Made by a program: the position numbers and the translations under genes. Positions 3,672 through 6,644 of a DNA stretch of 64,000 bases are shown here, piece by piece. The stretch lies in the sequence record NC_031127.1; one strand, written 5' to 3'. The notes under the pieces are model-generated. The model ran no database searches. It was not told the origin of the DNA and saw nothing but the letters and a program-made list of their open reading frames with translations. Every line of letters begins with the position of its first letter. The stretch's first letter is position 1.

Positions 3672-3998
3672 ATGGGAATGTATCGTGAAGGCCCTGAAAG
3701 CACGGTGACTCACCGTAATCATGATTACTCTGTGGATGCATTGCTGGATATAGCGGAACGTCATAGCCTCGTTCAAATTCCAGTGTCTAGAATAGAATGG
3801 ATTTTAAACGAGACTACGCTCGATGATGAGCGGGTTAAGAATGCAGATACGGATTATCCAATAATCGTGCTGCACGAAGGAAGTTTGTATATTGTATTAG
3901 ACGGTGCCCATCGCCTTGCGAAGGCGGTAGCCGAAGGCAAAGACACCATCGCAGCCAAGATATTGGTGCCTGCGAATTTACCGAAACCGGTACGATAA
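3672..3998 (+). CDS. stand-alone ParB/Srx-like N-terminal domain protein
   Basis: PIIV...IVLDGAHRLAKA motif; GAGG SD. Confidence 0.72.
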   Translation: MGMYREGPESTVTHRNHDYSVDALLDIAERHSLVQIPVSRIEWILNETTLDDERVKNADTDYPIIVLHEGSLYIVLDGAHRLAKAVAEGKDTIAAKILVPANLPKPVR

Positions 3999-4029
3999 AA
4001 GTCTAATTACAAGAATACACTGTATTATG
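3997..4029 (+). promoter_or_regulatory. phage promoter for the main tRNA/ncRNA operon
   Basis: 22-bp exact copy of 826-847 followed by TATG (4026-4029). Confidence 0.55.
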
Positions 4030-4108
4030 TCGGAAACCCGATTTGATGTTGCACAGAGCGTTACGCTGCGGCGTTTGCTGGTGTGCAGGGTTAGGTCGGG
4101 ATTCTGGC
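4029..4108 (+). ncRNA. 80-nt rod-like hairpin RNA at the operon 5' end
   Basis: GTCGGAA/TTCTGGC, CCCGA/TCGGG and TGCAC/GTGCA stacked helices. Confidence 0.45.
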
Positions 4109-4116
4109 ACCTATTT

Positions 4117-4202
4117 GGCGGGTTACTCAAGCGGTCAACGAGAGCAGACTGTAAATCTGTTGCCTTCGGGCTTCGTAGGTTCAAATCCTTCACACGCCAC
4201 CA
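4117..4202 (+). tRNA. trnY: tRNA-Tyr (GTA), with stem mismatches
   Basis: Loop CTGTAAA, long variable arm, CCA end; G-A mismatch in the acceptor stem and T-T in the T stem. Confidence 0.88.
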
Positions 4203-4208
4203 AACAAT

Positions 4209-4428
4209 GGTACCTGTCACAGCAGCCCTTGAGGCTTACGCGATGATGACTGGTCGCCCATTTTACCGGGTAACACATTCCTGCCAGCGCGCTATTGCCG
4301 CGAAGGTTTGCCCCCGGTGTTGTGCGTTATTCGGGTCTACCCACCATCTGCGGATGGTGCGTTGATGTCTCGATATACGCCATAGGGACGCCTTGAGAAC
4401 TCCGTGAAATTCGGAGAGGTACCACCCA
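4209..4428 (+). ncRNA. ~218-nt tRNA-like RNA (acceptor stem + T-arm with large insert)
   Basis: GGTACCT/AGGTACC acceptor, CTCCG-TGAAATT-CGGAG arm, ends ACCCA; internal helices. Confidence 0.55.
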
Positions 4429-4495
4429 TTCTTGTGTTTCCTTATCCTGAAGACATTCCTAAGACAAATTCATTCATGGTCGAGGAAACACAGAA
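4429..4495 (+). ncRNA. hairpin with conserved 37-nt loop, copy A
   Basis: 13-bp stem TTCT(T)GTGTTTCCT/AGGAAACACAGAA; loop similar to 5579-5615. Confidence 0.55.
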
Positions 4496-4503
4496 CCTAT
4501 TCA

Positions 4504-4579
4504 GGTGCTATCGTCTAGTGGCCGAGGATACTACCCTGTCACGGTAGAGACCGGAGTTCGATTCTCCGTAGCACCGCCA
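4504..4579 (+). tRNA. trnD: tRNA-Asp (GTC)
   Basis: Cloverleaf, loop CTGTCAC, CCA. Confidence 0.95.
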
Positions 4580-4587
4580 TTTTCAAA

Positions 4588-4663
4588 TGCGTCTTAGCTC
4601 AGTTGGTAGAGCGCACCCCTGATAAGGGTGAGGCCACTGGTTCAAGTCCAGTAGATGCAACCA
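4588..4663 (+). tRNA. trnI: tRNA-Ile (GAT)
   Basis: Cloverleaf, loop CTGATAA, CCA. Confidence 0.95.
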
Positions 4664-4670
4664 GTATTGC

Positions 4671-4747
4671 ATTCCCGTCATCTAGTTGGTCCAGGATACG
4701 ACACTTTCACTGTCGGTACACGAGTTCAAATCTCGTCGGGAATACCA
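4671..4747 (+). tRNA. trnE: tRNA-Glu (TTC)
   Basis: Cloverleaf, loop CTTTCAC, CCA. Confidence 0.95.
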
Positions 4748-4752
4748 TTTGT

Positions 4753-4843
4753 AGAGAATTGACTGAGTTGGTTTAAGGTGCTCCCCTGCTAAGGGAGTGT
4801 ATGCGAAAGTGTACCATTGGTTCGAATCCAATATTCTCTGCCA
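4753..4843 (+). tRNA. trnS: tRNA-Ser (GCT)
   Basis: Loop CTGCTAA, long variable arm, discriminator G, CCA. Confidence 0.93.
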
Positions 4844-4844
4844 T

Positions 4845-5018
4845 GTTCTCTTGCTGTGGGAAATAGAAGCGAACGTAGAAACGCCGGTTAGCTCAAAGCT
4901 TAGAGCGTCTCATCTTCGGATGAGAAGGTTGGGGGCGCAACCCGAAATCCCTATCGGCAACGGCCTGCTTGTCAGGATTAGAAACATCTACGTGGATGGG
5001 TACTTCTACAGCAAGAAC
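4845..5018 (+). ncRNA. multibranch RNA enclosing a tRNA-like module (4883-4959)
   Basis: Outer stems GTTC..TTGCTGT/ACAGCAAGAAC and TAGAAG/CTTCTA; inner D-arm-like AGCTC..GAGC and an anticodon arm capped by cUUCGg. Confidence 0.5.
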
Positions 5019-5042
5019 AAAACAGTGGGAGCATTGTCCACT

Positions 5043-5151
5043 GTGACACCGGCAAAGGTTTCGACCTTGCGGGTTGGGCGGAAGCCCGATGTTCCCCCGA
5101 ACGCTGGCCTTCTGGCCAATACAGTGAAAGCTTACCCTTGCCGATGATCAC
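5043..5151 (+). ncRNA. multibranch structured RNA
   Basis: CGGCAA/TTGCCG and GGGT/ACCC close four tetraloop hairpins (TTCG, GGAA, CCCC, TTCT). Confidence 0.45.
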
Positions 5152-5224
5152 CTCTTCTGCTGCTGCCAACACACTGTATAACCAGAATCAGTCCTGCCTT
5201 AAATGGCAAGCGTTCACCCTTTAC

Positions 5225-5302
5225 GTTTCCTCAAGGCGGCTTGGGGTGTTATCTCTCGGCTCTGTTGGGTAACATCGTGGTTCAACTCCATGGGAAACAC
5301 CA
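5225..5302 (+). tRNA. aberrant tRNA-like RNA, anticodon unassignable
   Basis: Acceptor GTTTCCT/GGGAAAC + A + CCA, T-arm CGTGG-TTCAACT-CCATG; 4-nt D loop; 9-bp anticodon-position stem with a 14-nt loop. Confidence 0.55.
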
Positions 5303-5308
5303 AACAAT

Positions 5309-5400
5309 GGCTCCGTAGCTAAATCGGTAGAGGCAGACTTTAATTAGTTCTCCAACGATTTTATAATCGCGTGGTGTAGGTTCAAGTCCTACCGGAGCAA
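5309..5400 (+). pseudogene. degenerate type-II-like tRNA (possibly derived from Leu-TAA)
   Basis: GCTCCG/CGGAGC acceptor, GTAGG-TTCAAGT-CCTAC T-arm, long variable arm; 6-nt anticodon loop, no CCA. Confidence 0.5.
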
Positions 5401-5474
5401 GAGCACTGCTGTTAAGTTGGTTAACACCCGACCCATACTCGGATATTCGCACGTTCGATTCGTGCCAGTGCTCG
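5401..5474 (+). tRNA. atypical tRNA with CAT anticodon (Met or Ile2)
   Basis: GAGCACT/AGTGCTC acceptor, loop CCCATAC (C33 instead of U33), T-loop TTCGATT; CCA not encoded. Confidence 0.65.
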
Positions 5475-5484
5475 CCCTTATTTA

Positions 5485-5560
5485 GACTCTGTAGTTCAGT
5501 TGGTAGAACGGTGGACTGTTAATCCATATGTCGCAGGTTCGAGTCCTGCCAGAGTCGCCA
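5485..5560 (+). tRNA. trnN: tRNA-Asn (GTT)
   Basis: Cloverleaf, loop CTGTTAA, CCA. Confidence 0.96.
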
Positions 5561-5566
5561 CATTTT

Positions 5567-5626
5567 GCATTGCCCGAGTCCCGAATGACATTCCGGAAAA
5601 ATATCATCCATGGTCACGGGCAGTGC
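5567..5626 (+). ncRNA. hairpin with conserved 37-nt loop, copy B
   Basis: 10-bp stem GCATTGCCCG/CGGGCAGTGC; loop similar to 4445-4481. Confidence 0.55.
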
Positions 5627-5831
5627 AGAACCAAAATCCCAGCCTTCGCAGAAAAAGCTTACCTGCATTAGCGGTCCCCTGCGGGGGTTGGGTACCACCT
5701 TTGTCCGTTTTGTTTTTTTCTTTCAATTGCCTGGCGGTATTGGTGGGAACAAAACGGGTAAAGCCCTAGCGGGGGAAAAGCCGTTAACAACAACAGAAGC
5801 AGTAAAAACAGAAGTAAAAGCAGGAGTAGTT

Positions 5832-6644
5832 ATGTTTACTATCTTACGCAAAATCAATGGTAACCGCACACCAACCGAACACGAATCCCCTACGCTGGGT
5901 GATACGAAGTCACAAGTGTTCAAAGATGCGATGTCGCTTCTTACCGAATCCAATAACGTGCATAACTGCATGGATTCTGGGATGGATGCGAAGCCGTGGA
6001 TTAACGGCAAACCCAAACCGATTGAGGAGTGGGTAGAGCGCTTTAAGAAAGCGTACGGCGCGACAGACTCAGACAACCAAGAACTGGTTTCTCTGGTCAG
6101 TGAACTCGCACCGGGAATGTTTGACAAAGCCAATGCGCGTTTTGCATCGGACTTTGGTCAACTGGAAGAAGCCTTCCTGAAAGATACCGGGCAAACTATC
6201 ATCTGGAAATGTCCGAACGGACTCCCGATTGATATCCAGTTCCAAAACATTCCCCGTCAGTCTGTTGAAACACTACATACCACGCTCGATTTCATCGAAG
6301 CGGATGAGTTGAAGTTTGCGGTGTTCAACAGCAAGGCGTTGTGGGATGGGTATAACTCCGCTGAACTGTTTGGCGGTGAAGCCACCGAGATTTCCTCGGT
6401 AGAACTCCAACACGTTTACTTTGACGATACGGCCATGCCGCAAGAAGCGGTGCTCAAAGCCAACCGTCGTGGTACCCGCACTATGGAACAGGTCATCGGG
6501 GTGCTTGCTTATGGCAGCTCCGAACAACCCGACCCAACCACAGGCAACGTGCCGGTCACAGTGATGACCTACGAGTTTATCTACCAAGGCGATGAAGTCT
6601 ACATTACGAACCGTCACGGTAAGACCGTGGACTCCATCCGTTAA
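5832..6644 (+). CDS. hypothetical protein
   Basis: AGGAG SD before ATG 5832 (MFTILRK...); the track's start at 5610 overlaps structured RNA. Confidence 0.8.
   Translation: MFTILRKINGNRTPTEHESPTLGDTKSQVFKDAMSLLTESNNVHNCMDSGMDAKPWINGKPKPIEEWVERFKKAYGATDSDNQELVSLVSELAPGMFDKANARFASDFGQLEEAFLKDTGQTIIWKCPNGLPIDIQFQNIPRQSVETLHTTLDFIEADELKFAVFNSKALWDGYNSAELFGGEATEISSVELQHVYFDDTAMPQEAVLKANRRGTRTMEQVIGVLAYGSSEQPDPTTGNVPVTVMTYEFIYQGDEVYITNRHGKTVDSIR

Follow-up and report, generated by a model that had tools for sequence, protein, structure and literature searches.

What is a short sequence doing when it stands twice in the transfer RNA (tRNA) island of a jumbo phage, each time just behind a tRNA or something that resembles one? 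The question is raised by a 64,000-nucleotide (nt) stretch of sequence record NC_031127.1, hereafter the window, which matches Erwinia phage vB_EamM_Huxley (KX397368) with 100% identity at the same coordinates; Huxley is one of the SPN3US-like jumbo phages and belongs to the genus Machinavirus. The island at 4117-5560 holds, per ARAGORN and Rfam, tRNA-Tyr, Asp, Ile, Glu, Ser, an odd 94-nt "Ile(aat)", and Asn. An earlier inspection of the letters alone (the sequence-only reading) had reported a 37-nt loop at 4445-4481 and again at 5579-5615, each copy 3' of a tRNA or tRNA-like unit, and both copies are indeed found there: the second (copy B) begins its hairpin 2 nt past the CCA of tRNA-Asn, and the first (copy A) follows a 219-nt tRNA-like unit. 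We find that the repeated sequence is the apical part of a hairpin RNA element of ~70 nt, which we call HP1 and whose two copies in the window both lie on the plus strand (Table 1).

The hairpin differs in several ways from the one described earlier. Its closing stems, given as 13 and 10 base pairs (bp), are actually 14-15 bp long, as the 5' UUUUG (UUCU-U-G in copy A) pairs with the 3' CAGAA, and the supposed loop is mostly paired (CC/GG, a bulged U, GAAUGA/UCAUYC, and AUU/AAU), with a terminal loop of only 7-9 nt. Overall, HP1 is a single long, irregular, unbranched hairpin made up of a basal helix, a 3x3 internal loop, a second helix, and an A-rich loop of 7-9 nt. When both regions were folded as hairpins, each beat all 200 shuffles (z-scores in Table 1). 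The GACATTCC...CATGGTC blocks occur exactly twice in 64 kb, where 0.01 occurrences would be expected, and the flanks common to both copies are CA-UUUUG on the 5' side and CAGAACC on the 3' side; the downstream sequence reads CCAAAAUCCC for copy B and CCUAUUCAGG for copy A. We collected 22 tRNA regions of relatives and built a covariance model, R1, from 21 HP1 copies; across the window it retrieves the two HP1 sites at 85 and 83 bits, the next best match being the reverse strand of copy B at E = 0.5.

The strongest evidence for a conserved structure comes from the basal helix. Over 27 distinct HP1 sequences, 97% of its cells are paired and 8 of its 11 pairs show changes on both sides; none of 500 shuffles reached the observed values, and sliding the partner strand by 1-3 columns lowered the paired share to 35-52%. 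Across phages the helix is 12-15 bp long with an invariant UUUG at its 5' base, and it extends outward by pairing of UUU(U)G with C(A/G)AA(A), where in copy A the UUCU-U-G strand meets CAGAA and a C-G pair takes the place of U-G. The stems of the two copies had been called completely different and unrelated, a description that does not survive comparison with relatives: intermediate stems bridge them (GUGUUACCC, GUGUUGCCC, GUAUUGCCC, GCAUUGCCCG, GUGUUUCCU; examples of both strands in Table 1), and the Huxley A and B stems are therefore homologous, standing at opposite ends of a continuous series of stems linked by compensatory changes. The helix also holds 33 G-U or U-G cells, all of them on the plus strand, which would be A-C mismatches if read on the other strand, and the minus-strand fold differs between the two window copies. 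Because of these wobbles, the folded HP1 molecule is the RNA on the tRNA strand. Selection on RNA structure plus sequence, as the sequence-only reading had proposed, is thus borne out by covariation, which is strong in the basal helix and present to some extent in the apical one.

For the apical domain, MAFFT and RNAalifold run on the mixed set misaligned the 3' halves of the Wellingtonvirus copies, and apical pairs were instead counted on a structure that we specified, using 11 type-2 sequences (types are defined below). Here 83% of cells are paired and three pairs show compensatory changes: GAAUG/CAUUC becomes GGUUG/CAACU in an IMG/VR contig (L147), and AUU/AAU becomes GUU/AAC independently in phiEaH2 and in that same contig. 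We regard the covariation support for this helix as moderate because the region varies little. The CC/GG pairs lie beside the bulged U, and the C of GAC is never paired; in Wellingtonvirus, an unrelated bulge of 12-14 nt stands where the bulged U and CAUGGUC block stand elsewhere. Pairing of GGU with the ACC tail was also considered and showed no consistent covariation. The terminal loop is CCUAAGACA in what we call type 1 and CCGGAAA in type 2, with a longer variant in Seoulviruses, so that there are two or three allelic types of apex, and these are mosaic with respect to genus. For instance, SNUABM_4, Caitlin, and Asesino carry a type-1 apex at the tRNA-Asn position, whereas their close relatives ChrisDB, SNUABM_9, and phiEaH2 have type 2 there, and the Huxley clade keeps one copy of each of two types. 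A search of the 64 kb for antisense targets of either apical loop found them to be no commoner than chance.

With either window copy and four diverged variants as queries, blastn found HP1 in ~42 phage records, all SPN3US-like, from phages of Erwinia, Salmonella, E. coli, and Proteus, and it is present in all four SPN3US-like genera sampled (Machinavirus, Erskinevirus, Wellingtonvirus, and Seoulvirus), with no SPN3US-like jumbo phage among those examined lacking it. A covariance-model search, which the sequence-only reading had named as a way to check the element, recovered phage relatives with diverged stems and conserved apical blocks, and R1 recovers 40 HP1 copies in the collected phage and IMG/VR loci. 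In IMG/VR, the loose pattern GACATTCC N8-25 CATGGTC matched at least 119 loci, none of which was scored by R1, and we treat these as chance matches. Tighter type-1 and type-2 apex patterns combined with R1, applied to IMG/VR and to the JGI/ENA metagenomes, returned SPN3US-like contigs only, and in 185,579 bacterial and archaeal genomes the type-2 pattern matched 77 times with no match passing R1, i.e., no cellular HP1 was found. A match to a known Rfam family had been named earlier as an outcome that would speak against a new element. Rfam 15 was scanned with window positions 3950-5850 at E ≤ 10 and with eight relatives at E ≤ 0.05, and these scans gave no family matching HP1, even at the looser threshold. 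Literature searches found no prior description of HP1 either. HP1 is a new, clade-specific RNA family of a known general kind, namely the structured non-tRNA RNAs of phage tRNA islands.

Where HP1 stands is nearly as constant as how it folds. In nearly all phages, the helix starts 0-2 nt past the CCA of the preceding tRNA, usually the array's last one, tRNA-Asn; the tRNA(CAU) that precedes HP1 in SPN3US ends in CGCCC, not CCA. In Salmonella phage 1252, the upstream tRNA has been replaced by an HNH endonuclease gene and HP1 is still kept, so HP1 is more than the trailer of that tRNA. On its 3' side, 24 of the 27 distinct sequences have CC within 0-2 nt of the helix end, typically with a purine before it and A, C, or U as the next base; phiEaH2 and SNUABM_11 (two distinct sequences) have CAC where the others have CC. 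Copy A lies mid-array with tRNA-like spacing on either side, and it therefore behaves like a gene of the tRNA array. It is restricted to a clade made up of Huxley, Parshik, pSal-SNUABM-04, SNUABM_6, SNUABM_10, and SNUABM_43. Because the tRNA-like unit adjoins tRNA-Asp directly in other phages (SPAsTU, Asesino, and phiEaH2), copy A is an inserted paralogue, a duplicate specific to that clade.

These observations bear on the processing of the tRNA transcript. Bacterial ribonuclease (RNase) P recognizes a helix of 12-15 bp followed by R-C-C (R being a purine), as found in tRNA acceptor/T-stem stacks and in hairpin substrates, among them precursor 4.5S RNA and the C4 RNA of phages P1 and P7, and it pairs with the two C residues of CCA. 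A hairpin substrate of this kind needs a helix of ~12 bp or more and then a single-stranded R-C-C(A); HP1 has 12-15 bp and, in 24/27 sequences, CC, and its R-C-C follows the helix as in the 4.5S and C4 substrates. The final A of CCA is conserved neither in HP1 (CCA, CCC, or CCU) nor in the tRNA-like unit, while all true tRNAs of the array encode CCA, and because this terminal A varies, docking of RNase P fits better than a need for aminoacylation.

We would therefore like to put forward, as the reading we favor and at somewhat short of even chances, that HP1 is a tRNA-sized hairpin RNA of the tRNA array that is freed by RNase P and whose apical part binds a partner. The basal helix with its R-C-C would imitate the acceptor/T-stem stack and 3' end of a tRNA, and because of this mimicry, cleavage at the base of HP1 would be expected. 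Host RNase P would cut near the invariant UUUG, where the helix has its 5' base; after one such cut, the upstream tRNA would carry 0-3 nt of trailer, to be trimmed by exonucleases, and HP1 would be set free as a stable, tRNA-sized RNA. Function would then reside in the highly conserved apical domain, which most likely would serve as a platform to which a phage or host protein binds. The sequence-only reading had suggested a protein-binding aptamer or decoy, a processing signal, or a small ribozyme. The function of HP1 is probably tied to tRNA-transcript processing: position and flanks favor such a link, while the conserved apical domain implies something further, e.g., binding. Four observations (the conserved apex, its allelic types, the paralogue in mid-array, and the persistence of HP1 where the tRNA has been lost) indicate that the RNA so released, or its apex, has its own function.

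A precedent is found in E. coli, where RNase P removes hairpins located behind the final tRNA in the valU, lysT, and leuX transcripts; the cut falls between U and G, 2-7 nt past the CCA (PMC4176162). Like HP1, these trailers form a stable hairpin that lies a few nt past the final tRNA's CCA and has a U-G step at its 5' base. In contrast to them, HP1 has no U-tract, its apex is highly conserved across genera, and it is also found mid-array.

Several points weigh against release by RNase P. The geometry of HP1 is not strictly tRNA-like, given that 0-2 nt separate the helix end from the CC, that the helix varies between 12 and 15 bp, and that the CC is missing from two lineages. Conservation of the UUUG/CAAA-CC frame could have another cause, e.g., RNase E sites or pairing with the downstream modules. 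Additionally, RNase P needs no conserved apical sequence, and the model leaves the most conserved part of HP1 functionally unexplained. The SPN3US-like phages are related to nucleus-forming phages, which bears on the access of host RNase P to the transcript, and literature searches found no transcriptome of an SPN3US-like phage in which expression or cleavage might be seen.

A bolder reading, which we consider unlikely, is that HP1, together with the tRNA-like unit and the downstream modules, founds a class of trans-acting small RNAs embedded in tRNA arrays and freed by tRNA processing, HP1 itself being either a new class of self-cleaving ribozyme or a mimic of an acceptor end by which a host factor directed at tRNAs is titrated, the allelic apical loops serving as specificity determinants.

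A rather improbable explanation is that HP1 is a decoy or sponge, i.e., a rod-shaped mimic of an acceptor end or anticodon arm that would titrate a host tRNA-binding factor such as a defense nuclease aimed at tRNAs or a CCA-modifying toxin. Its place in a tRNA island, its tRNA size, and its acceptor-like base with the R-C-C tail would suit this role, as would the type-2 loop CCGGAAA, which has 7 nt and is closed by U-A, and the apical "alleles", mosaic among genera and both kept in the Huxley clade, form the pattern expected of arms-race determinants. All of this is circumstantial, however; no likeness to a specific tRNA was found beyond general shape, and HP1 is confined to one phage clade.

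We give the same low chance to a signal for RNase III of the T7 R1.1 type. Signals of that type consist of two helices with a small internal loop and lie between transcription units of a lytic phage; here stacked helices of ~10 bp or more each would direct a single cut, which would part the tRNA array from the downstream messenger RNA (mRNA) and leave protective hairpin ends. HP1 likewise has two helices, ~25 bp in total, on either side of a 3x3 internal loop in which U / UC is conserved; copy B has the tRNA array on one side and an mRNA leader on the other; and the stem sequences vary while their length stays roughly constant. Nevertheless, RNase III sites neither need nor usually show such sequence conservation in an apical helix and loop, which is much stronger in HP1 than in the R1.1 signals; copy A lies between two RNA genes, with no mRNA to separate; and the conserved R-C-C tail, which also sets HP1 apart from those signals, would be left unexplained.

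Quite improbable, in our view, is a role purely in cis, with HP1 as the first module of a long structured 5' leader that controls how strongly the downstream gene (gp20 or, in phages without gp20, the gp21 homologue) is expressed or how stable its message is. Behind copy B there is always a run of 250-550 nt of conserved hairpin modules, together with a possible pseudoknot, an enhancer-like tract rich in CA, and a Shine-Dalgarno site, and the gp21 homologues, which tblastn found in 52 phage records, all SPN3US-like, occur in the same group as the ~42 records with HP1. However, copy A precedes a tRNA rather than an open reading frame (ORF), 200-500 nt separate HP1 from the start codon, different genera have different genes behind the leader (Kwan and Asesino have no gp20), and no complementarity to the ribosome-binding site was seen. 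A riboswitch was rejected on the same position of copy A and for want of an Rfam match.

The location of HP1 also recalls that of theta ribozymes, which are found at the 3' ends of phage tRNAs, at a distance of at most +/-5 nt (PMC10879173), as HP1 is, and which have a plausible role in tRNA 3'-end formation. A new small self-cleaving ribozyme with a theta-like role and a different fold, cutting at its own 5' end and so trimming the trailer of the upstream tRNA, would share this genomic logic, as HP1 usually starts 0-2 nt past the CCA, and would suit variable stems combined with invariant unpaired sites (the U before CC, the bulged U, the C of GAC, GGUC, and CAUUCC). We judge it very improbable nonetheless. 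HP1 matches no Rfam ribozyme family at E ≤ 10, it is an unbranched hairpin with no pseudoknot backed by covariation, and Wellingtonvirus swaps the CAUGGUC block for its unrelated bulge, which is hard to square with a catalytic core; moreover, a 2',3'-cyclic phosphate on a tRNA with an encoded CCA plus 0-2 nt would hinder exonuclease trimming.

The sequence-only reading had excluded the hammerhead and the HDV-like (hepatitis delta virus-like) topology, and we agree on both counts. The hammerhead has a conserved core, CUGANGA ... GAAA, at a three-way junction. The CUGAAGA of copy A resembles it by chance, as most homologues have CCGAAGA, CCGGAGA, or CCGAAUGA (CCGANGA in general), the fold is unbranched, and there was no Rfam match. 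Theta ribozymes form a nested double pseudoknot, with P1, the 5'-most strand, paired to an internal segment and a catalytic C in J4/2; in contrast, HP1 is an unbranched hairpin with no Rfam HDV match and no identified catalytic C. Covariation pairs its 5'-most strand with its 3'-most strand over 11-15 bp, with 0-2 nt upstream, and an HDV-type double pseudoknot therefore cannot fit. An HDV-like P1 pseudoknot between the U-rich 5' flank and the A-rich loop was rejected as well, since the flank pairs with CAGAA instead, with the C-G for U-G exchange in copy A. Twister, twister-sister, pistol, hatchet, and hairpin ribozymes likewise gave no match in the Rfam scans of window and relatives. That HP1 acts as DNA (a recombination or endonuclease site, or an origin-like hairpin) or is a chance repeat has a negligible probability, for although the tRNA arrays of relatives contain HNH homing endonuclease genes, one of them immediately upstream of HP1, and the arrays are highly rearranged between phages, the many G-U wobbles would turn into A-C mismatches if the other strand were folded, the two copies do not share a conserved minus-strand fold, conservation extends across four genera with compensatory changes, and the shared blocks are expected only 0.01 times.

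Other known element types were considered and set aside. Neither ARAGORN nor Rfam RF00005 calls a tRNA, or a transfer-messenger RNA, at either HP1 site. An intrinsic terminator was rejected because no T-run follows the hairpin and the terminator scan has no match at either copy; the combined scan for sigma-70 promoters and terminators stayed at background level. A mimic of a CRISPR repeat was likewise rejected, as the sole CRISPR-DR match at E ≤ 10 lies at 4723-4763 on the minus strand, away from HP1, and the sequence GUGUUNCCC is, we presume, only superficially like the start of a type I-E repeat. As for coding, the ATG of CATGGTC opens ORFs in both copies, but these are out of register and not conserved.

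Among structured phage RNAs, GOLLD and ROOL resemble HP1 in being non-coding and near tRNA islands; they are 500-800+ nt long, multi-pseudoknotted, and cage-forming, whereas HP1 is a hairpin of ~70 nt, and neither family was matched in the window or in the eight relatives. Closer in size are T4 species 1 and 2 (rnaC and rnaD), structured non-tRNA RNAs of 120-140 nt in the T4 tRNA cluster that are matured by the tRNA-processing machinery. Like HP1, they are small, structured, and inside a phage tRNA cluster, although no likeness in sequence or structure would be expected.

The presence of HP1 also affects gene annotation. The annotated start of Huxley gp20, 5610, is an ATG inside HP1-B, while the gp20 homologues of most close relatives (SNUABM_6, 10, 43, and pSal-SNUABM-04) start at the equivalent of 5832, behind a GCAGGAG Shine-Dalgarno site, and ATG 5832 is the probable true start. 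In SPN3US, an ORF (SPN3US_0003) is annotated across the HP1 copy on the opposite strand. The products of gp20-gp23, gp11, and gp17 match no Pfam family and belong to PHROGs of unknown function.

The 200-500 nt between copy B and the next gene are filled by modules with variable stems and large conserved loops (Table 1), which are conserved across Machinavirus and have partial counterparts in other genera. The second hairpin module is followed by a conserved linker, UACCACC (5693-5699). Beyond the third hairpin, CCC at 5764-5766 may possibly pair with GGG as a pseudoknot, the stem/pseudoknot sequence being GCCCUAGCGGGGGAAAAGCCG, and beyond 5786 come a CA-rich leader, the Shine-Dalgarno site, and the gp20 ATG at 5832.

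Upstream of copy A, the tRNA-like unit at 4209-4427 has a T-arm-like hairpin at 4400-4416 (CUCCG-UGAAAUU-CGGAG), a tail A-CCC, and a structured insert of ~180 nt where the D and anticodon arms would be; it is called by neither ARAGORN nor Rfam. Homologues with a conserved 3' part and inserts of 60-150 nt were found in SPAsTU, Asesino, phiEaH2, SNUABM_29, SNUABM_11, and Kwan, and across phages the tail reads A-CC(C/U).

Table 1. HP1 copies, neighboring elements of the tRNA island and leader, and examples of basal-helix strands
Feature	Position	Strand	Details
tRNA-like unit (219 nt)	4209-4427	+	7-bp acceptor-like helix 4209-4215 / 4417-4423 (inverted repeat, folds)
HP1 copy A (type-1 apex)	4429-4498	+	R1 85 bits; fold z = -3.4
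HP1-A basal helix	4429-4443 (U4433 bulged) / 4482-4495	+	followed by CCU 4496-4498
HP1-A apical domain	4445-4481	+	CCUAAGACA in terminal loop
tRNA-Asp(GUC)	4504-4579	+	8 nt past HP1-A basal-helix end, 5 nt past HP1-A CCU
tRNA-Asn(GUU), last tRNA of the array	5485-5560	+	ARAGORN, Rfam; dinucleotide CA (5561-5562) between its CCA and HP1-B
HP1 copy B (type-2 apex)	5563-5633	+	R1 83.2 bits; fold z = -4.0; covariation
HP1-B basal helix	5563-5576 / 5617-5630	+	followed by CCA 5631-5633
HP1-B internal loop, apical helix, and terminal loop	5580-5613 (apical helix); 5594-5600 (terminal loop)	+	internal loop AGU / UCA; terminal loop CCGGAAA
Second hairpin module	5638-5692	+	variable 14-bp stem, conserved loop ..UACCUGCAU..; fold, alignment of 11 phages
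Third hairpin	5699-5763	+	fold, inverted repeat, alignment
Small conserved stem	5767-5786	+	UAGCGG / CCGUUA
Huxley A basal strands			5' GUGUUUCCU; 3' AGGAAACAC
Huxley B basal strands			5' GCAUUGCCCG; 3' CGGGCAGUGC
SPAsTU basal strands			5' GUGUUAUUCC; 3' GGAGUAACAC
Kwan basal strands			5' CUCUGAGA; 3' UCUCAG
SNUABM_11 basal strands			5' GGGACAAUCA; 3' UGAUUGUUCC

Other parts of the island are also unusual. A cloverleaf-like RNA at 4883-4960, whose "anticodon" arm is a 7-bp stem with a UUCG tetraloop and no anticodon loop, sits within the annotated ORF gp17 (4851-5147), which may for this reason be spurious. A degenerate tRNA-like fold with a 10-bp central arm lies at 5225-5300 and ends in ..GGAAACACCA; the 13-mer that follows it, CACCAAACAATGG, is the same as the 13-mer after tRNA-Tyr at 4198. 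The "tRNA-Ile(aat)" at 5308-5401 (94 nt, with an unusual insert, 31 bits) may be intron-bearing or degenerate. At 5402-5473 there is a clean cloverleaf tRNA with anticodon CAU and a 3' end CGCCC instead of NCCA, which was detected at 38.9 bits in the permissive Rfam scan only and was missed by ARAGORN and the GenBank annotation; its homologue directly precedes HP1 in SPN3US. HNH (HNH_3 / NUMOD4) homing endonuclease genes were found in the tRNA arrays of phage 1252 (L140:1957-2496), SNUABM_29 (L133:2634-3170), and SNUABM_6 (L123:3421-3939), and such genes probably drive the extensive rearrangement of the arrays. Salmonella phage SPFM1 (L141, LR535901) has the HP1 halves and flanks in permuted order at 2440-2640, which looks like an assembly or circular-permutation artifact.

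Phage tRNA islands repeatedly hold RNAs that are not tRNAs (T4 species 1 and 2, GOLLD, ROOL, and theta ribozymes), and to these HP1 adds a compact motif strongly backed by covariation. Current annotations are wrong where it stands, with the Huxley gp20 start inside the hairpin and the SPN3US ORF across it. HP1 is narrowly distributed, yet it is easily testable and belongs to a phage group with genetic tools (SPN3US in laboratory hosts of Salmonella and E. coli). If its base is an RNase P handle, HP1 would reveal the way in which these phages mature the final tRNA of an array and detach it from the downstream mRNA, and an apical domain that binds a factor or is catalytic would make HP1 a new functional RNA class.

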